Positions 4,801 to 59,649 of a stretch of DNA of 64,000 nt are shown in pieces. A program made the translations under genes and the position numbers. The stretch is from Bispira polyomma (lineage: Eukaryota), in assembly GCA_965649765.1 (NCBI GenBank), contig OZ287752.1:52700001-52764000 (forward strand), read 5' to 3'. The notes under the pieces are model-generated. The model saw nothing but the letters and a program-made list of their open reading frames with translations, did no database searches and was not told the DNA's origin. Numbering within the stretch: position 1 is the first letter of the stretch; each line of letters opens with the position of its first letter.

Positions 4801-6787
4801 GACATAATTTGTATAATCTACTTTGGCATTTTTCTTTTAATCACAATATATAACTTATAAAAATATTATATTACTCTTCACAATTAACTCGTGTAATATA
4901 ATTTAAGTCCTTCAAAATAAAAGATAATAACTTCCTGATACAAACTAACCTTACTCTAGCTAACATAGATTCGACAGACTACATTTATGCAGGAAATCAC
5001 AAAATCACATGCAACATCAACCATCATATTCCATGCGATATTTTCATTAATAGCACCAGCCAAATGTTTTTCAGCAGTGTATTTACCATGGTTGGTTTGT
5101 CCTAGTTATTATGGAGTTGGTCTGTGGAATGTCGTGTCCCTAGTTCAACTCCTGGTACAATCACATTAGCTACTATAAATGATATCCTTGCACATGATGT
5201 GAAGACACAATCACCTCCCCATCGACAACTACCACTATGTTGTACGACTATCTCTTCTTGGCCCTCTAAGGAGCAATGTTATTATCTATTTATCTATCTT
5301 GCTGTTATATCACCCAAATAATGTAACATACGACACTATTGACCGTATCTTATTACTATTTTTAAGCACAAATATTTTCATGAAAACTTGATCAATTGAT
5401 AGTAATATTCACAAGTGAAAATATGGATCGAAGTATGGACAAAGGTTTTTTAAAACTATATGTAAAATACACATGCTATAATGGAAATGTAATGGTGAGA
5501 GGAAAATATAAGTATAATCGGTATTAGCAGTGCAAAACCTGTGATTTCATTCATTTCACATATTATTAGTAATATTATTATGAATTTTTAACGTGCTTCA
5601 TTGATGCTAGGCAGCTTCTAAAGCGCAACAGCAGAATCAATTGTCCAATCATTAAGTCCAAAGAGATTGCAAAGCCGTAAGAAAGGAAGTGGGAGCGTGC
5701 ACAAGGGAAGCTAAGGTGGGTGTGCAAGCTTAAAAAGATAGTTTTTCAGCTTTTTCCTAAAATTGATAAGTGTGTCAACTGATCCGAGGTCGACTGGGAA
5801 ACTATTCCATAACAGTGGAGCTGCAGTGGAGAACGCTCTGGATCCCGCCTTCCTGACTAAGTTTTTGGCATTTTCAGAAGGTAGTATGTCTTTTCCCAGC
5901 AGGGAGATGGGAAACGAATGTTACATTAAGTCTATGTTGCTGCATTGCATATGTGGCTGAGAGGTTAGAATGTTCGACTTTGGATCAGATTGTTCCAAGA
6001 TGGATCCTAGCTGCAGGTCAGGAAAAGTTAGTTTAGGGCAAACTATTTCACACAAGGTTGAGTAATGGGCAACCAATGGGTGTTAGTCCTTGCATTGTAT
6101 GTGGGAGCTGGGAGTGCACAATACCTACAAATGAGTAAATATACCTTCAGGTGGAGGTACTGCAGCTATGTACTTTAGGATATTTTCATGTGATGGCACA
6201 GCACTAAGGAACGACATCTTCGCCTCCATCAAAGTTTTATCCTTGTCTGTGGCACCCACTATGACGTCAGAAAAAATGATTTACGACAAATTATGTTACT
6301 ATGTAAATACTGAAGAGAGAAACTAAATAGAAACTGGTGCTGCAAAATGTGCAGATGTAAGGACAACTGCTATCACACTTTCACATGACATTAGTTACAA
6401 AGCCTGTATTTTACCGTGGCATTATTCTTGGCTTGACAATCCGTTCTGTTCTTTTTACTGTTTCATGCAGTTTAAGTTAGCCTATGACTTATATGCTAAT
6501 CAGTATTTATTTGTGTCTGATAAATTACTTACTTATGTGTATTGCTTGCTCATAGACTGAAATTCAAAATAACAGAAATGATGAATAGCGCTTTGAGTTT
6601 AGGAAGACACAGTACTAGCCCACATTAATAGTACAGGATATGACACAAAAATATGCCTACCTTTATTTACTTTGGCCACTACATCAATTGAATTTCTTGA
6701 CTGTTTTAATTTTGCCTTCAGTATCTCAGCAAACATCCCTTTGGCCAAAGGTAAGGGATCGCCCAATGCAACTCTGTCATTAGTCAA
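1898..6787 (-). CDS. Tyrosine-kinase-fold domain and C-terminal tail (exons 20-26 of the receptor)
   Basis: LAKGMFAEI (G-loop), VVAK, HENILKY, IILEYC, VAKGMSHLH, IIHKRLGARNVLL, AKVTGFG, KWMAPE, TDVWSYGIFLHEV, GKPPY, GYRLPK, MMHCWNPEPNQRPSF. Confidence 0.93.
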
Positions 6788-34365: not shown

Positions 34366-34444
34366 CAATACAAAGACTCTTTTTGTCAGAAAAGGCATGT
34401 TTAATTACATTAAATTTTAATAGCAGAAATAAATTTCTAGTTGT

Positions 34445-34656
34445 ACTGTGCAGAGCACGACCCAACAGGGGTCTGCTAGTTCAGTTCAATAGTAAAGCAT
34501 ATACCTTAACCCCTGGCGATTAACCAGTATACTACTGTCCTCTAACTTCATAATCTCTCGACCAATCAGAAATGATGCTACAGCAAGCAGGCTAATTTAT
34601 GTGTGGTCATTCTTCCATTTTGAAAAGGAAACTTCAACTGACAACACGAACAATTT
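34445..34656 (+). repeat. Split direct repeat A1 (212 bp)
   Basis: Identical by eye to 40180-40391; contains CCAATCA and CCATTTTG promoter-like words. Confidence 0.95.
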
Positions 34657-36028: not shown

Positions 36029-38980
36029 GACGTTGACCAACTACCAGGTAGTAGGGCAGACAGTGGAAGTAATAAAAGTAAAATAGATAATAAGAAAAGT
36101 AAAACATTAGTAAACAGTTTTAAATCAGTTAAGTCACCTAGTATTAATCAGGTGAATAGTTTTGAAGGAAGTAAAAACATTCATAGATTTTTGCATGAAA
36201 GTTTAAGGTTGAATAATATTGATTCCACTTACAATAACACACACGTGAGTGAAACTATATGTAGTAACGAACAATTAGATTTCAAGAATCCCTATATGGG
36301 TGAGGTCACGAACGGTAACATGGGCATTCTGCCACATAGTATATATCAACACCCAGTACAGGGCTTCATAGAATGTGATACTGACACATCGATTAAAAAT
36401 ACCCCTTTTAATGTCAGTAATAGCTGCACTGATAATACATATAATATACCAGTTGGCAAACAATTGGGGATAGGTGAACAATCATTGATGGATTGGGACA
36501 ATTCACAGGTAAATAGTGAGTATACAGGCAGCTTTTACTTTAATAATAATAACAACATTTGTGTCAATGATAATTCCCCAATTTGGGGAAGGGAAAATAT
36601 AAAGACAAGTTATATCGTGGACACATGTGTTACGGGCAGCACAGGCTACGGTAGCCAATTGCAGACATGCAATGGTGCATATATGAGAGTGTTAATTTCT
36701 GTAACTAACTGGTTATATGTAGTTCCAAACTATCAGGGAGGTTTGCCTGTCCTATTTCTTCAGAGCAGTGAAAATAAATTGTCAGGTTTTTATGTCATGG
36801 GAAATGGATTTATAGGTCAGTATGGACATTACTATAGATGTTTAGACGAGCCAGTAGGCGAAATTGTGGTCACGGAAACTAGTTACAGAGACATCACTCT
36901 TGTTGCCCAGTTAGAAGGAAAATGTCAAAACAAGGCTACGGTAGCCCATTGCAGACAGGATGCTGATAATGCATATACAAATTTTCAAAAAGACATTTAT
37001 TATAAAGAACATTTTAATATGAATTATACTGAATATGTAACTGATATAATAGATAAAATGTTATATGAAGACAGTGATAATAAAGTATCACTGCGAATGC
37101 AAACGGGACCTAGTAAGGTCAGTACAGTTAAATCCTGTGCAAAAGGTAGAGTGTACACGTCCGCTTCTTCTCCAGAACTAAGGTTACTAGACAATATTTC
37201 AGACACTAAGGTGTTAAAAATAAGTAAGGACTTTAATTTACCAGAAAAAACTAAGGGTTTCTTGGCATTGTCAGAAACAAAATTTAAATTTCAAGGACCA
37301 GATAGGGCTCCCATACACATAACCTCACCACAACAAATGTTAGACTTAGCTAGGATAATTAAGGACACGGGTTACCCAAACTACAGAATGGCACGATTTC
37401 CTATCAACTCTGGTTTGAATATTGAAGTTTGGGAACAGATACTCCAGGACTACCCAGACGAACTTCTCATCCAGTATTTGAAATTCGGTTTCCCTTTGTC
37501 ATTAACAAACCCTGACATACTTAAAATTAAGGAAGTTACTAATCACCACTCTGCCCTTCAACATACTTCAGCAATCACACAATATTTAGAGAAAGAAAAG
37601 CAATGTGGCGCAATGTTGGGGCCCATTGTGGACATCAATAACGATTTATTTCATAGTTCTCCATTGCTCACCAGACCCAAGGACTATACTAAAAGGCGCG
37701 TCATACTCAATTTGTCTCACCCTAAGGGCGCTTCCCTTAATGATAACGTAGACAGGGAAAAATTCGACGGAGTCGATTTTGTCCTTAGATTTCCTACCAT
37801 TGATGATATAATACAAAAGATTCGTAATACCATTAATCCCAAGATCTTTAAACTGGACGTTGCGCGTGCATTTCGAAATTTGAGAGTTGACCCAGCTGAT
37901 GCTGTCAAACTAGGAATTTGCTTTAAAGATAATAAATATATCGATCCTGCGGTTGCGTTTGGCTGGGTCCACGGCTCCGCAGCTTTTCAGCGCTGTTCTG
38001 ACGTGGTCGCTTATACCATGGCCAAACGCAATCACACCATATTCTGTTATATCGACGATTACGTTGGAGTCTCTACTAAAACGGAAGTGGATGAAGCATT
38101 TAAAGAACTGCATGGATTAGTCACCTCTCTCGGTTTACCCATCAACCCGGGAAAAATTAGTAAACCTAGTTCCACAATTACTTGTTTAGGAATAGATATA
38201 AACATAGATGACAACACCATAAGTATTACTACAGAGAAGCTTCAGGAAACTTATAACTTGTGTCTAGAGGTACGCGACAAGAAATGGGTCTCCCGTTCGA
38301 AATATCAATCGATATTAGGTAAACTTTTATATATACATAAATGCGTCAAACCGGCACGCATTTTTATAAATAGGTTACTCATCGCATTCCGAGGTAACAG
38401 CCAGGCGAAACGGATAAAGATCACGCAAGAAATTAAGGCTGACCTTTCTTGGTTCGTTAAGTTTCTATATAGCTACAACGGCATAAATTACATTACTCCG
38501 GTCACTGATACTTATGGCAACCAAGTCTTCATTGATGCATGCCTTACAGGCTTAGGAGCAGTATGTGGTAAGCAAGTATATGCTACTCCATTATTTAATA
38601 TATATGGACAACCATTATCTATAGTACACATAGAAATGTTGAATATACTTATAGCTTTGCGTGTTTGGGGTGAGCAATGGAGACATAATAAAATCATAAT
38701 GCATTGTGATAATATGGCTGTTGTCCTGGTAGTAAGGTCTAATAGAACTAAGGATAAATTTTTGGCATTATGTCTTAGAAATATTTGGTTATTGTCAGCG
38801 ATATATGACATAACTATTGAAATTCAACATATTAGGGGTAAGGAAAATATTATTGCTGACTTGCTGTCCAGATTGTTTTCAGACCAACCCCCACTTGGGG
38901 AACAGTTCAATATTCTTAAGGATAATTGTGACTGGCACAATATACCAATACAGTACTTTAATTTGGACCTTGATATATAA
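36029..38980 (+). CDS. pol: Ngaro Pol: long N-terminal extension + reverse transcriptase + RNase H
   Basis: KRRVILNLS, KLDVARAFRNL, FGW, YIDDY, CLGI (RT); FIDACLTGLG, HIEMLN, HCDN, GKENIIADLLSR (RNase H). The frame is open from directly after the gag TAG. Confidence 0.95.
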   Translation, partial: DVDQLPGSRADSGSNKSKIDNKKSKTLVNSFKSVKSPSINQVNSFEGSKNIHRFLHESLRLNNIDSTYNNTHVSETICSNEQLDFKNPYMGEVTNGNMGILPHSIYQHPVQGFIECDTDTSIKNTPFNVSNSCTDNTYNIPVGKQLGIGEQSLMDWDNSQVNSEYTGSFYFNNNNNICVNDNSPIWGRENIKTSYIVDTCVTGSTGYGSQLQTCNGAYMRVLISVTNWLYVVPNYQGGLPVLFLQSSENKLSGFYVMGNGFIGQYGHYYRCLDEPVGEIVVTETSYRDITLVAQLEGKCQNKATVAHCRQDADNAYTNFQKDIYYKEHFNMNYTEYVTDIIDKMLYEDSDNKVSLRMQTGPSKVSTVKSCAKGRVYTSASSPELRLLDNISDTKVLKISKDFNLPEKTKGFLALSETKFKFQGPDRAPIHITSPQQMLDLARIIKDTGYPNYRMARFPINSGLNIEVWEQILQDYPDELLIQYLKFGFPLSLTNPDILKIKEVTNHHSALQHTSAITQYLEKEKQCGAMLGPIVDINNDLFHSSPLLTRPKDYTKRRVILNLSHPKGASLNDNVDREKFDGVDFVLRFPTIDDIIQKIRNTINPKIFKLDVARAFRNLRVDPADAVKLGICFKDNKYIDPAVAFGWVHGSAAFQRCSDVVAYTMAKRNHTIFCYIDDYVGVSTKTEVDEAFKELHGLVTSLGLPINPGKISKPSSTITCLGIDINIDDNTISITTEKLQETYNLCLEVRDKKWVSRSKYQSILGKLLYIHKCVKPARIFINRLLIAFRGNSQAKRIKITQEIKADLSWFVKFLYSYNGINYITPVTDTYGNQVFIDACLTGLGAVCGKQVYATPLFNIYGQPLSIVHIEMLNILIALRVWGEQWRHNKIIMHCDNMAVVLVVRSNRTKDKFLALCLRNIWLLSAIYDITIEIQHIRGKENIIADLLSRLFSDQPPLGEQFNILKDNCDWHNIPIQYFNLDLDI

Positions 38981-38986
38981 TTTCAG

Positions 38987-39964
38987 GTGCAAACCACTTC
39001 ACACAGAACTTCACCAACTCAGCCTGGAGAAGAATAGGTTCTGCATTAAGGCCCAACACTACAGCTACCTACAATAATCAATTCAGAACATTTACATCAT
39101 TCATGTGTTACGCAGGAATACAAACAATGAATACTCATGCATTCATAGCCTTTCTTGAATACCTTGTTCAGAACGGTTCTTCACCAAGCATGATAAACAA
39201 CTACATTGCTGCCATAAAACATATGGCTAAGAAACTATATTTTGATTTAAGCATATTTGAGAACAACATAGTCTCAATGTTTACAAGGAGCTTGGCTCAT
39301 ACTTCAGGTTTTAGACCCAAACCCAAGGGAATCTTTGAAATACGTCACATTTTCCTCATTTCAAAGGCTTGTGAAATTTTGGATGACCCTCCTTTGTTCA
39401 GAGCTATTTTTCTGTTAGCATTTTTTCGGGTTTTTGCGAATCTCCAACATAGCCCCCCATTCCAGAGCAAAGTTTGATCCAACCCGCCATTTTCTGAGGA
39501 AAGATGTAGTATTTGGTTATCCGGGGGCACATATAATCCTTAAGTGGGCCAAAAATTTCCAAAACAGAACAGACACACATATCATACAGGTACCTCTCCT
39601 TGAGAATTCCATTTTATGTCCAGTTAAGGCACTTCAGGAGTTAATGTCATCTAGGCCACTGGAGGAACATAAACCTCTTTTTGTTAACATACAGCAACCA
39701 CATTATGTGATTATTGAGTCACACGTTAGATCTGCTTTAGCTGCAGTATTACAACACATAGGCATTCCATTAGAATCACACAGTTTTCATACCTTTAGAA
39801 GGTCAGGGGCTACATACGCGTTTAATAACAACGTCTCATTGCAGAACATAATGGCCCACGGCCTTTGGAGATCATCAGCCGTGTGGTCATATTTACACAA
39901 AAATTCTCAAGCTATTTCTGCAATCCCACTCACTTTTGCTTCTTCTATTCCCTCCTTTTCTTAG
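38987..39964 (+). CDS. Tyrosine recombinase (one extra T in the T-run 39421-39426 splits the frame)
   Basis: N-terminal ALRPNTTATY...F..F; catalytic set R (LRISN), K (KWAK), HxxR (HTFRR), W (HGLW), Y (VWSY). Removing one T restores LLAFFGFLRISN. Confidence 0.9.
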
Positions 39965-39971
39965 TTTGGCT

Positions 39972-40391
39972 TGGGTCCTTTTAAAATTGAGGATATGTAT
40001 TTTAAAAACCTCTCTTTTACCTTATATTTTAACCCTACCTGTAAATAGATATATATGAAACATATAAACTAACATGTACAGGAAAATAAAGTCCTCAAAC
40101 ATTAGTTTTACTATCTTTGGAAACTTACACCACTGGACATCTAACCTATCACATTTTCATTTGACCTTTACCAAATTGAACTGTGCAGAGCACGACCCAA
40201 CAGGGGTCTGCTAGTTCAGTTCAATAGTAAAGCATATACCTTAACCCCTGGCGATTAACCAGTATACTACTGTCCTCTAACTTCATAATCTCTCGACCAA
40301 TCAGAAATGATGCTACAGCAAGCAGGCTAATTTATGTGTGGTCATTCTTCCATTTTGAAAAGGAAACTTCAACTGACAACACGAACAATTT
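39972..40391 (+). repeat. B1/A2 junction of the split direct repeats (overlap ACTG)
   Basis: B1 39972-40183 equals B2 41262-41473; A2 40180-40391 equals A1. Confidence 0.95.
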
Positions 40392-40423
40392 CCCACCCCC
40401 TCCCCTTTACCACAGCTTCATCT

Positions 40424-40458
<35 letters not shown>

Positions 40459-40627
40459 TAGGGCCTATCTAGGTCATTATAGTAAATGTTGTTACACAAA
40501 GTTGGCACTATGAAGGATTTAGGCTAATTTTGTTTACGAATATAATGATTGTTGATTTCATTTACACTTATGCAACATTAGGCTTAGCCATTCTCCTGAA
40601 ACTGATTTCCATGATAAGCTTTACCTA

Positions 40628-40847
40628 GGTAACTTACGTGCAACCTCCATGGATTCGACCCCTGGTCCGTGTGGTACTGGTTCCCAGCTTGCAACTACCC
40701 CCTGGTGTGGGCTACCGGGGATTAAAGCTCTGCAGTTGGGAACCTTTATTGCTAGGCGACTAGGTGCCGTAGGACCTGGGTTCTAACCTAGGAGGTGGTT
40801 TTCGTTGAGATGGTAATAGTTAGTCATGAGGTATGGCGAATCCATTG
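40628..40847 (+). ncRNA. Candidate conserved structured RNA element in the Ngaro A2-B2 spacer
   Basis: Nested stems P1/P2/P3 plus junction motifs shared with the minus-strand element at 63416-63661 (see findings). Confidence 0.65.
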
Positions 40848-41261
40848 TTTATGCTGTTTTAGCCACATTTATGTAAACAAAAGTTTACTATGGTAGAATT
40901 GAGGTCCGTTGATACATATAGAGTGTGAGAGTATAAAACTTTCTTTTAAATTGCTTTCATTGTGCATAAATAGTAGGCTATGGTTGTTCAGTATTTGGTT
41001 TACCAAACACATTTGTGATTGGAAAGTTGACGTCGCTGAATGTAACATTATGACTATGGTGTTTATTATTTTATGATATATAGAACTATCGTATGAACTT
41101 GAATTTATGGACTGTGACAATGTTTAGTCTTAGCGTTTATTAGAAATGGTAATAGGGTACTATTTCTTTAATTTTGACTTGTTTATTCTAGTCTTTCAGT
41201 TAATTGGTTCTTAATTATACTGTTATTATTTGTAGTCTTTTGACTTGTTGCACACTTGTGC

Positions 41262-41473
41262 TGGGTCCTTTTAAAATTGAGGATATGTATTTTAAAAACC
41301 TCTCTTTTACCTTATATTTTAACCCTACCTGTAAATAGATATATATGAAACATATAAACTAACATGTACAGGAAAATAAAGTCCTCAAACATTAGTTTTA
41401 CTATCTTTGGAAACTTACACCACTGGACATCTAACCTATCACATTTTCATTTGACCTTTACCAAATTGAACTG
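41262..41473 (+). repeat. Split direct repeat B2 (212 bp)
   Basis: Identical by eye to B1; contains AATAAA. Confidence 0.95.
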
Positions 41474-56295: not shown

Positions 56296-56402
56296 GGGCC
56301 GTATTCACGAAGGGACTTAGCCAGGTCTTAGGCTTAAATCTAGCACAAAAGTATACTGATTTAAGCCTAAGACCTGGCTAAGTCCCTTCGTGAATACGGC
56401 CC
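56296..56402. mobile_element. 107-bp perfect-palindrome MITE with CAG target duplication
   Basis: 45-bp perfect inverted arms (56296-56340 / 56358-56402), 17-nt loop, CAG on both flanks. Confidence 0.9.
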
Positions 56403-58569: not shown

Positions 58570-59649
58570 ATGCAAATGATACCAAGACAAGAAGTTGTCA
58601 TTCACAGCTCCACTATAAGCCACAGATGGCTGTTAGTATTTTTGTCGTTATCAACTGTGTTGTGTACTATACTGGTATACACTTTCACCATCGCCAAATT
58701 CGTCCAGCCAGATCTAAAATATTACATTCGTTACCAAGGTTGCCATGACAACAACACAGGAGGGGGTAAAGGAGGACATGTGATACATAATGGTACCACT
58801 GGTCAAGGTTGGTGTCAAAAGTGCTTCATGACTTATAAAGAAGCAGATTACCCAGGTGGTAGAAGATTAGGGAATCATATTTACAATGTGGCCTCATTAA
58901 TCGGCATTGCTAGGTTGAATCGTATGACGCCTCTCTTGCCGGAAAATGCAAGGATATTTTTGTCGATGGATGTTCCTGTTCAGGTTGTGAAGGTTTCTGC
59001 TTACAAGAAGTTTGTCAAAGAGAGTCATCACTTTAAAGAAGTCGATAGCAGAAAGTTTGACCCTCGGGTGACAAATCTCACATGTAATGTGACATTGGTG
59101 GGTTTCTTTCAGTCGTGGAGATATTTGAAAGAAGTGCAGCATCTCATCGCAAATCAGTTCAGGTTTAAAGAGAAATTTGTCACTAAGGCACAGAGTTTGT
59201 ACGATAGTTACATCAGAAACAAGCAGTCTGATAGTGTCATTGGAATCCATGTACGCAGAGGTTTTACTTTACAAAAACTACAAAAACGTGGCTATGTCAC
59301 TCCAGGTCCATCCTATTTTCAACATGCGATGGAATATTATCAACACAAAATCTACCCAAATAAGACTCTACTATACCTGATTAGTAGCGACGACATCAAA
59401 TGGTGCAAGAAGAATATTAAAGGAGATCAAGTGATTTACTCTACTGCAGAACATCCAGAAGTAGACATACTCCTTCAGTCTTTCTGTAATGACTCTGTTA
59501 CATCCCTGGGATCGTTTGGCTGGTGGTGCGGTTACTTTGCTCAGGGACAAATGGTCTACTTTAAAGATTTTGCACGACCAGGATCAGCTGTCGATAAGGA
59601 AGTCAATATAACAGACATGTTTTATCCACAGTGGAAAGCAATGTCTTAG
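58570..59649 (+). CDS. Galactoside alpha-1,2-fucosyltransferase-like (GT11), type II membrane protein, single coding exon
   Basis: 359-aa ORF with N-terminal TM (WLLVFLSLSTVLCTILVYTF); motifs RLGN...ASLIGIA..N, GFFQSWRY, IGIHVRRG, YF..AM.Y, SDDIKWCK, GSFGWW. Confidence 0.92.
   Translation: MQMIPRQEVVIHSSTISHRWLLVFLSLSTVLCTILVYTFTIAKFVQPDLKYYIRYQGCHDNNTGGGKGGHVIHNGTTGQGWCQKCFMTYKEADYPGGRRLGNHIYNVASLIGIARLNRMTPLLPENARIFLSMDVPVQVVKVSAYKKFVKESHHFKEVDSRKFDPRVTNLTCNVTLVGFFQSWRYLKEVQHLIANQFRFKEKFVTKAQSLYDSYIRNKQSDSVIGIHVRRGFTLQKLQKRGYVTPGPSYFQHAMEYYQHKIYPNKTLLYLISSDDIKWCKKNIKGDQVIYSTAEHPEVDILLQSFCNDSVTSLGSFGWWCGYFAQGQMVYFKDFARPGSAVDKEVNITDMFYPQWKAMS

Follow-up and report, generated by a model that had tools for sequence, protein, structure and literature searches.

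To our knowledge, the tyrosine recombinase (YR) retrotransposons, namely the DIRS, Ngaro, PAT and VIPER elements, lack a tRNA primer-binding site and are among the least understood retroelements. An earlier note on the window analysed here (the whole 64-kb stretch of DNA) drew attention to the spacer between two repeats of Ngaro-like elements, where invariant motifs appeared to be held between stems of freely varying sequence, as would be expected of a functional RNA fold. The questions raised by this locus are whether such a fold is real, whether it belongs to the retrotransposon in which it lies, and what it could do there.

Layout of the host element

Element 1 is a Ngaro-like YR retrotransposon with reverse transcriptase (RT), RNase H-like and YR domains, whose parts lie in the window as follows.

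34441-34656, + strand: A1 repeat, 216 nt, 100% identical to A2
36152-38980, + strand: RT/RNase H-like ORF (Pfam RVT_1, E 8.6e-10; RVT_3, E 3.9e-4, its score just under the cut-off)
39434-39964, + strand: C-terminal part of the YR ORF (Pfam Phage_integrase, E 1.2e-5; score 25.6 bits, cut-off 27.1)
39972-40183, + strand: B1 repeat, 212 nt, 100% identical to B2, with AATAAA at 40085
40176-40391, + strand: A2 repeat, whose first 8 nt (junction TTGAACTG) are also the last of B1
40392-41261, + strand: A2-B2 spacer, 870 nt, no ORF longer than 83 aa on either strand
41262-41473, + strand: B2 repeat, 212 nt, with AATAAA at 41375

In the canonical Ngaro layout, A1-[ORFs]-B1A2B2, the direct repeats are split around the coding region; the elements described here share these split direct repeats and the RT, RNase H and YR domains, but differ in that a module-bearing spacer of ~0.9-1.2 kb parts A2 from B2 (PMC8547959). 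The YR of element 1 has 2334 homologues at E ≤ 1e-3, and 56 at E ≤ 1e-30. Its frame is open over 181 aa, against 329 aa in at least 20 near-identical copies, and the copy in the window is thus probably defective. A CCHC zinc knuckle was found nowhere in element 1, ORF1 included, and a zinc-knuckle Gag was rejected as a partner of the RNA for lack of this motif. In four families (element 1, L047, L049 and L083), AATAAA is found at matching positions of B1 and B2, which suggests that a poly(A) signal lies in the B repeat and that a shorter mRNA could terminate in B1.

Several other features of the window and its repeats were observed along the way. A run of 28 A residues lies at 40427-40454, 36 nt past A2 of element 1; neither the L024 relative nor element 3, the second Ngaro-like element considered here, has this run, which marks it as a local expansion rather than a family-wide poly(A) tail. 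The first ~45 nt of the A repeat (window 40184-40230) are conserved after B1 in L047, L049, L056 and L083, and hold a small hairpin of variable stem (GACCC/GGGUC versus GUCU/GGAC) followed by CUGCUA. Further downstream, the intact ORF at 58570-59649 encodes a glycosyltransferase family 11 (fucosyltransferase) domain (E 3e-26).

Architecture and covariation of the spacer RNA

The earlier note had described the same ordered motifs in the spacers of element 1 (+) and element 3 (-), and all of them were recovered. In element 1, GGTAACTTACG lies at 40628-40638, TGCTAGGCGACTAGGTG starts at 40750 and ATGGCGAAT occupies 40833-40841; in element 3, GGTTACTTACG lies at 63661-63651, GTGTGG at 63601-63596 and ATGGCGAAT at 63428-63420. 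The three stems P1, P2 and P3 pair in both elements as had been proposed, in folds as well as in covariance models, with P1 of element 3 at 63610-02/63483-75. The limits of the structure had to be redrawn. The 5' motif GGTWACTTACG proved to be the 5' strand of the base of a longer rod, whereas the 3' motif ATGGCGAAT, previously counted as part of the module, lies beyond the conserved rod and is not general, being missing from the tails of most families and found upstream of P1 in others. Element 1 gives the following parts.

40633-40809, + strand: whole rod-shaped module (MFE fold, flank duplexes)
40633-38/40803-09, + strand: base stem of the rod (MFE fold)
40643-48/40791-96, + strand: P0 (MFE fold)
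40660-40668/40772-40780, + strand: P1, with a 3-bp extension at 40657-59/40781-83, enclosing the core
40669-40674, + strand: junction strand GUGUGG, kept in 43 of 44 sequences
40679-40689 and 40691-40693 with 40731-40744, + strand: P2, with a bulged U at 40690
40700-07/40713-20, + strand: P3 hairpin, a short 'type I' tip
40725-40730, + strand: conserved junction AAGCUC, from P3 to the 3' strand of P2
40750-40771, + strand: 3' junction strand UGCUAGGCGAYUAGGUGYC, near-invariant (44 sequences)
40833-40846, + strand: ATGGCGAAT and possible pseudoknot 3' strand (40650-58 pairing with 40838-46)

As predicted from the folds and alignments, the module is a rod of about 180-230 nt across families, which runs from the base stem through P0 and P1 to the junction formed by GUGUGG and the 3' junction strand, and on through P2 and the AAGCUC internal loop to P3. 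The longest ORF across it spans 45 aa, and families differ by indels within the conserved block.

The claim that the stems covary was borne out well above shuffled and slid controls. A first covariance model, R1 (136 positions), was built solely from relatives of element 1; in its alignment of 44 sequences, standard pairs fill 91.5% of cells (71.5% after shuffling), two-sided changes occur in 27 of 31 pairs, and 0 of 500 shuffles reach the observed value on any of five covariation measures. A second model, R2, covers all families with 36 pairs and 45 sequences, and here 90.1% of cells pair (72.9% when shuffled) and double changes affect 28 of the 36 pairs. Sliding the partners by 1-3 columns lowers pairing to 32-57%. 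Up to five standard pair types are found at one pair (for instance GC:21, AU:15, UA:7, CG:1, GU:1). Two-sided changes are seen in 11 of 12 pairs of P1, one of which reads UA:19, GC:12, AU:8, and in 12 of 14 pairs of P2, where 91% of cells are paired. P3 occurs across families either as a short hairpin with a conserved loop or in the longer 'type II' form of element 3, and the long stem covaries as well (CUCUG/CAGAG, CCCUG/CAGGG, CCUUG/CAAGG).

Since the alignments were themselves fitted to the structure, alignment-free checks were added. Folding the core of single sequences returned P1 in 25 of 27 representatives and P2 in 18 of 27, against 0.3-6.6 bp recovered when the 3' strands were shuffled. 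The folding energy of single sequences is unremarkable (z = -2.07 in element 1, -0.69 in element 3), and the case for the fold therefore rests on comparison rather than on thermodynamics. G-U and U-G cells outnumber A-C and C-A cells five to one (220 versus 44), an excess that assigns the fold to the sense strand, i.e., the strand of the ORFs. We consider it very likely, from these sequence comparisons, that the module is a selected, structured RNA domain on the sense strand of a clade of Ngaro-like YR retrotransposons.

Pairing extends beyond the positions covered by the model. Duplexes between cognate upstream and downstream flanks average -16.95 kcal/mol, against -11.63 +/- 0.67 when partners are taken from other families, and 0 of 7316 derangements match the observed mean. 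This outer helix mostly begins at the first base past the core, and its sequences are wholly different from one family to the next, for instance CCACCUCC/GGAGGUGG, CCACUACU/AGUAGUGG, AGCAGCAAU/AUUGCUGCU and CUUACU/AGUAAG, the last being that of element 3 (63638-33 with 63449-44). The non-coding L025-type repeat is common to element 1 over exactly 40448-40811 and stops at the 3' edge of the rod.

Two finer details were also considered. The candidate hairpin CUAG-GCGA-CUAG at 40752-63 has a GNRA loop (GCGA in 35 of 44 sequences, GCAA in 8 of 44); U-C mismatches interrupt the stem in 15 of the sequences. A competing 4-bp helix, GGCR/UGYC (40755-58/40765-68), pairs in 98% of cells with one-sided changes only, and on this sequence comparison the alternative helix is the better fit of the two candidates. 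The strands resembling the 11-nt tetraloop receptor (UAUGG/CCUAAG) are invariant and hence devoid of covariation, so that a tetraloop-receptor contact cannot be read from them. An HDV-like nested pseudoknot was suggested by the 9-mer ATGGCGAAT together with the pairing AUGGAUUCG/CGAAUCCAU, and was rejected as a general feature since it fails across families: in element 1 the pairing spans 9 bp (p about 0.04 versus shuffles), compensating changes are confined to comparisons between element 1, L107 and element 3, and shuffling the tails of 31 representative copies leaves a best duplex that is just as good.

Copies, position and novelty of the module

Building a covariance model had been put forward as a check on the fold. 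R1, although it derives from relatives of element 1 only, finds element 3 in the window with 38.3 bits (E 1e-7; match at 63615-63465 on the - strand), and a third copy was also detected.

63638-63444, - strand: module of element 3 (R1, 38.3 bits; R2, 94.3 bits; fold)
55601-55458, - strand: third, degenerate module (R1 match; R2, 39 bits, E 7.6e-8)

The third module has lost the 5' strand of P1 through an 18-nt deletion, a region in which its relatives L091 and L092 are intact in the alignment. According to BLAST and the covariance model, the module is the sole part of the spacer common to elements 1 and 3. Genome-wide (assembly of 1.04 Gb), the pattern GTGTGG, 65-95 nt, TGCTAGGCRAYTNGGTG has 284 + 100 = 384 exact matches, against 0 for the reversed-pattern control, and ~19 different sets of stems could be told apart by eye between the constant junction motifs among the matches listed. 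BLAST of the genome with the two copies yielded 646 and 166 first-look candidates, and 20 divergent copies (L093-L112) were taken for comparison.

Some of these copies lie in unusual settings. Eight element-3-like copies (L034-L041) are spaced ~29.4 kb apart on one strand of C3:15664436-15875060 and are 95-96% identical to element 3, an arrangement that looks like a tandem segmental duplication carrying the element. Near-identical units of ~1.3 kb (L007, L011 and L017) consist of A-spacer-B only, without ORFs and B1, and could stem from recombination between A1 and A2 or from the resolution of a circle at two BA junctions. L025-L028 and L030 belong to a non-coding repeat, at least 3 kb long, that carries an inverted B-end fragment, then spacer and rod (corresponding to 40448-40811), then unrelated sequence, with two tandem 173-nt repeats upstream. 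In the window itself, 56304-56399 is a near-perfect palindrome with arms of ~45 bp; it is probably a foldback or MITE-like repeat, scores weakly with R2 on both strands and is unrelated to the module.

The earlier note had placed the structure in the A2-B2 spacer of Ngaro-like YR elements, and this location holds: the order B1-A2-module-B2 was found in element 1 and in the five families of L024, L047, L049, L056 and L083. A search with a fragment of the YR gave 11472 first-look candidates; many of the best 150 are followed on the same strand, 550-1200 nt downstream, by one of the modules listed, an arrangement shared by at least four further families (A, B, C and D). Such YR/module pairs include ones with quite different stems (C1:24899671 / 24900795; C1:41431020 / 41432083; C1:67044835 / 67045958; C4:69310102 / 69309391). 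One large family with 76% YR identity has no module nearby among the matches listed. YR identity and model score amount to 74-77% and 112-133 bits in family A, 71% and 80 bits in D, and 67% and 44 bits in B, with C (74%, 65 bits) and L101 (70%, 132 bits) off the trend. Over these five families the score thus roughly drops with YR identity, which fits inheritance of the module together with the element.

No known RNA family had been recognised in the fold when it was first described, and the Rfam comparison agrees. Rfam 15 gave 0 matches in the window at gathering score, only chance-level matches for elements 1 and 3 at E ≤ 10, and 0 matches for 20 diverse copies at E ≤ 0.1; no likeness to the ribozymes of Rfam (HDV-like, hammerhead, twister, pistol and hatchet), to tRNA, to 7SL or to 5S RNA was seen. 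A search of the literature on Ngaro with ribozyme or secondary structure found nothing relevant. A tRNA-like or Pol III reading of GGGTTCNAA was discarded, as ARAGORN predicted 0 genes in six representative loci and the stretch is paired within P1.

Elsewhere, R2 matched none of four Ngaro-like loci reached through YR homologues, three of which come from one ENA assembly (L113, L115 and L117; 52-57% YR identity) and the fourth from a TARA metagenome contig (L116; 45%). As far as tested, the module is therefore not a general feature of Ngaro elements. A scan of metagenomes with the motif pattern returned 20 matches, about the number expected by chance, none of which scores as a module with R2; the model itself matched a single 20-nt fragment there (E 0.083). 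We regard a new RNA structure family, tied to a Ngaro-like clade, as real and strongly supported by the comparisons of sequences described above.

The distant loci have features of their own. L117 has B-like direct repeats ~1.4 kb apart, downstream of the YR ORF. A block of ~49 nt containing UAGGCRG...CUGACYCUG also lies downstream of the YR ORF, at L113:4491-4539 and at L117:4602-4649 and 4869-4914, in L117 between the two B-like repeats, and may be a cis element proper to the L113 and L117 elements.

Possible roles of the module

The explanation that we prefer, while rating its chances somewhat short of even, is a cis-acting recognition signal that would mark the read-through genomic RNA for reverse transcription or packaging. 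Given AATAAA in the B repeats, transcripts could either stop in B1 or continue to B2. Of these, only the read-through RNA would include the B1A2 junction together with the spacer and B2, presumably everything that a complete copy needs. A signal placed in the spacer would hence mark the read-through RNA only. The RT or the ORF1 protein of the element would then bind the marked RNA, leading to its packaging or to the start of cDNA synthesis, according to a logic that would parallel that of a retroviral packaging signal sited past the splice donor. The likeness to retroviral transport and packaging signals lies in only one RNA species carrying the signal; the module differs from them in having no motifs in common. 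That ORF1 is devoid of a CCHC knuckle speaks against a cis signal with this protein as partner.

The module would be the first concrete cis-acting candidate for YR elements, sited where only full-length RNA would carry it. It provides a defined object for retrotransposition, binding and ribozyme assays, together with a covariance model usable on other genomes. If confined to one lineage, its value would be narrower, that of a new lineage-specific RNA family.

The junction strands are invariant across families whose YRs go down to 67-76% identity, and a conserved host partner would fit this constancy as well as an element protein. The module could then serve RNA export, stability or splicing control through a host protein that binds it, by analogy with retroviral constitutive transport elements and those of IAP and MusD, a reading that we hold to be rather unlikely. 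Its position, past the last ORF but ahead of the 3' repeat, and its general shape of an irregular stem are in favour, as is the invariance of the loop strands in spite of the divergence of the element proteins. The MPMV CTE, the IAP RTE, the MusD MTE and the packaging signals presumably share this position, with a long irregular stem and conserved unpaired strands. The junction further contains two UAGG motifs 4 nt apart, a pair that we take to resemble hnRNP A1-type sites and offer as a lead. Against a host-bound element of this type, the module bears no sequence likeness to known transport elements.

The module might also act at the start of cDNA synthesis itself, as a tRNA-independent priming or RT-loading RNA that possibly cleaves itself to make the primer end; the cDNA start site of YR retrotransposons would then be the rod, which we think unlikely. 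For DIRS-1, the primer from which cDNA synthesis starts has been described as unknown (PMC7192593). As with hepadnavirus epsilon or the retron msr, a structured RNA could direct a tRNA-free start of the RT. Both of these RNAs are far smaller than the module, and their priming nucleotides are defined (a bulge and a branching G, respectively); no counterpart of these is identifiable in the module. A second comparison is with the 3' UTR structures of R2-like non-LTR elements and the tails of LINEs and SINEs, which are likewise covarying cis-RNAs in the non-coding 3' part; like LINE/SINE tails, the module is also kept by non-coding derivative repeats. Non-LTR structures, however, occupy the extreme 3' end and function in target-primed reverse transcription, whereas the rod belongs to a tyrosine-recombinase element, gave negative Rfam results and stands 500-700 nt from the likely poly(A) site, upstream of the AATAAA of B2, a placement away from the RNA 3' end that is awkward for direct priming.

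Ribozymes are known in retroelements, with HDV-like ribozymes in R2 and L1Tc and hammerheads in Penelope-like elements. The module shares with them a conserved core framed by covarying helices, and the invariant junction nucleotides between freely covarying stems could be those of a new self-cleaving ribozyme that processes the element RNA. We judge this decidedly unlikely, given that the Rfam searches matched no ribozyme, that no group of copies in the genome was seen to terminate at a single position within the module, and that ~180 nt is large for a small ribozyme. The 9-mer ATGGCGAAT is, we presume, the one found at J4/2 of the HDV ribozyme; the module nonetheless differs from HDV in giving no covariance-model match, in the lack of conservation of the would-be P2 pseudoknot across families, and in having a domain of 120-150 nt in the place of P3/L3.

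A promoter in A, if any, would be duplicated, since A2 is identical to A1, and a separate A2-spacer-B2 RNA of ~1.3 kb acting in trans, e.g., as a cofactor of the RT or of the recombinase, is conceivable though improbable in our estimation. The solo A-spacer-B units (L007, L011 and L017) are in line with it in so far as A-spacer-B can stand alone as DNA, which says nothing about expression, but recombination between A1 and A2 explains these units equally well. Nor is any complementarity of the module to the A/B junction conserved. The idea of a guide RNA was abandoned on the same ground, the 8-mers common to the module and the A/B junction in element 1 being lost in other families.

Very improbable, finally, is that the module is no RNA element of the retrotransposon, and that it represents a captured SINE- or MITE-like repeat or a hairpin at the DNA level: core k-mers are far commoner than flanks in public contigs, one non-coding family (L025-L028 and L030) has the module outside its standard context, and GAACCC/GGGUUC, in the lower part of P1, resembles a B box or a T loop, but ARAGORN and Rfam point to no tRNA, 5S or 7SL likeness, decay of an inverted repeat would yield neither compensating changes nor the five-to-one ratio of G-U over A-C, the model score roughly tracks YR identity (five families, with C and L101 off-trend), and the position of the module relative to the YR and B2 is constant across families.
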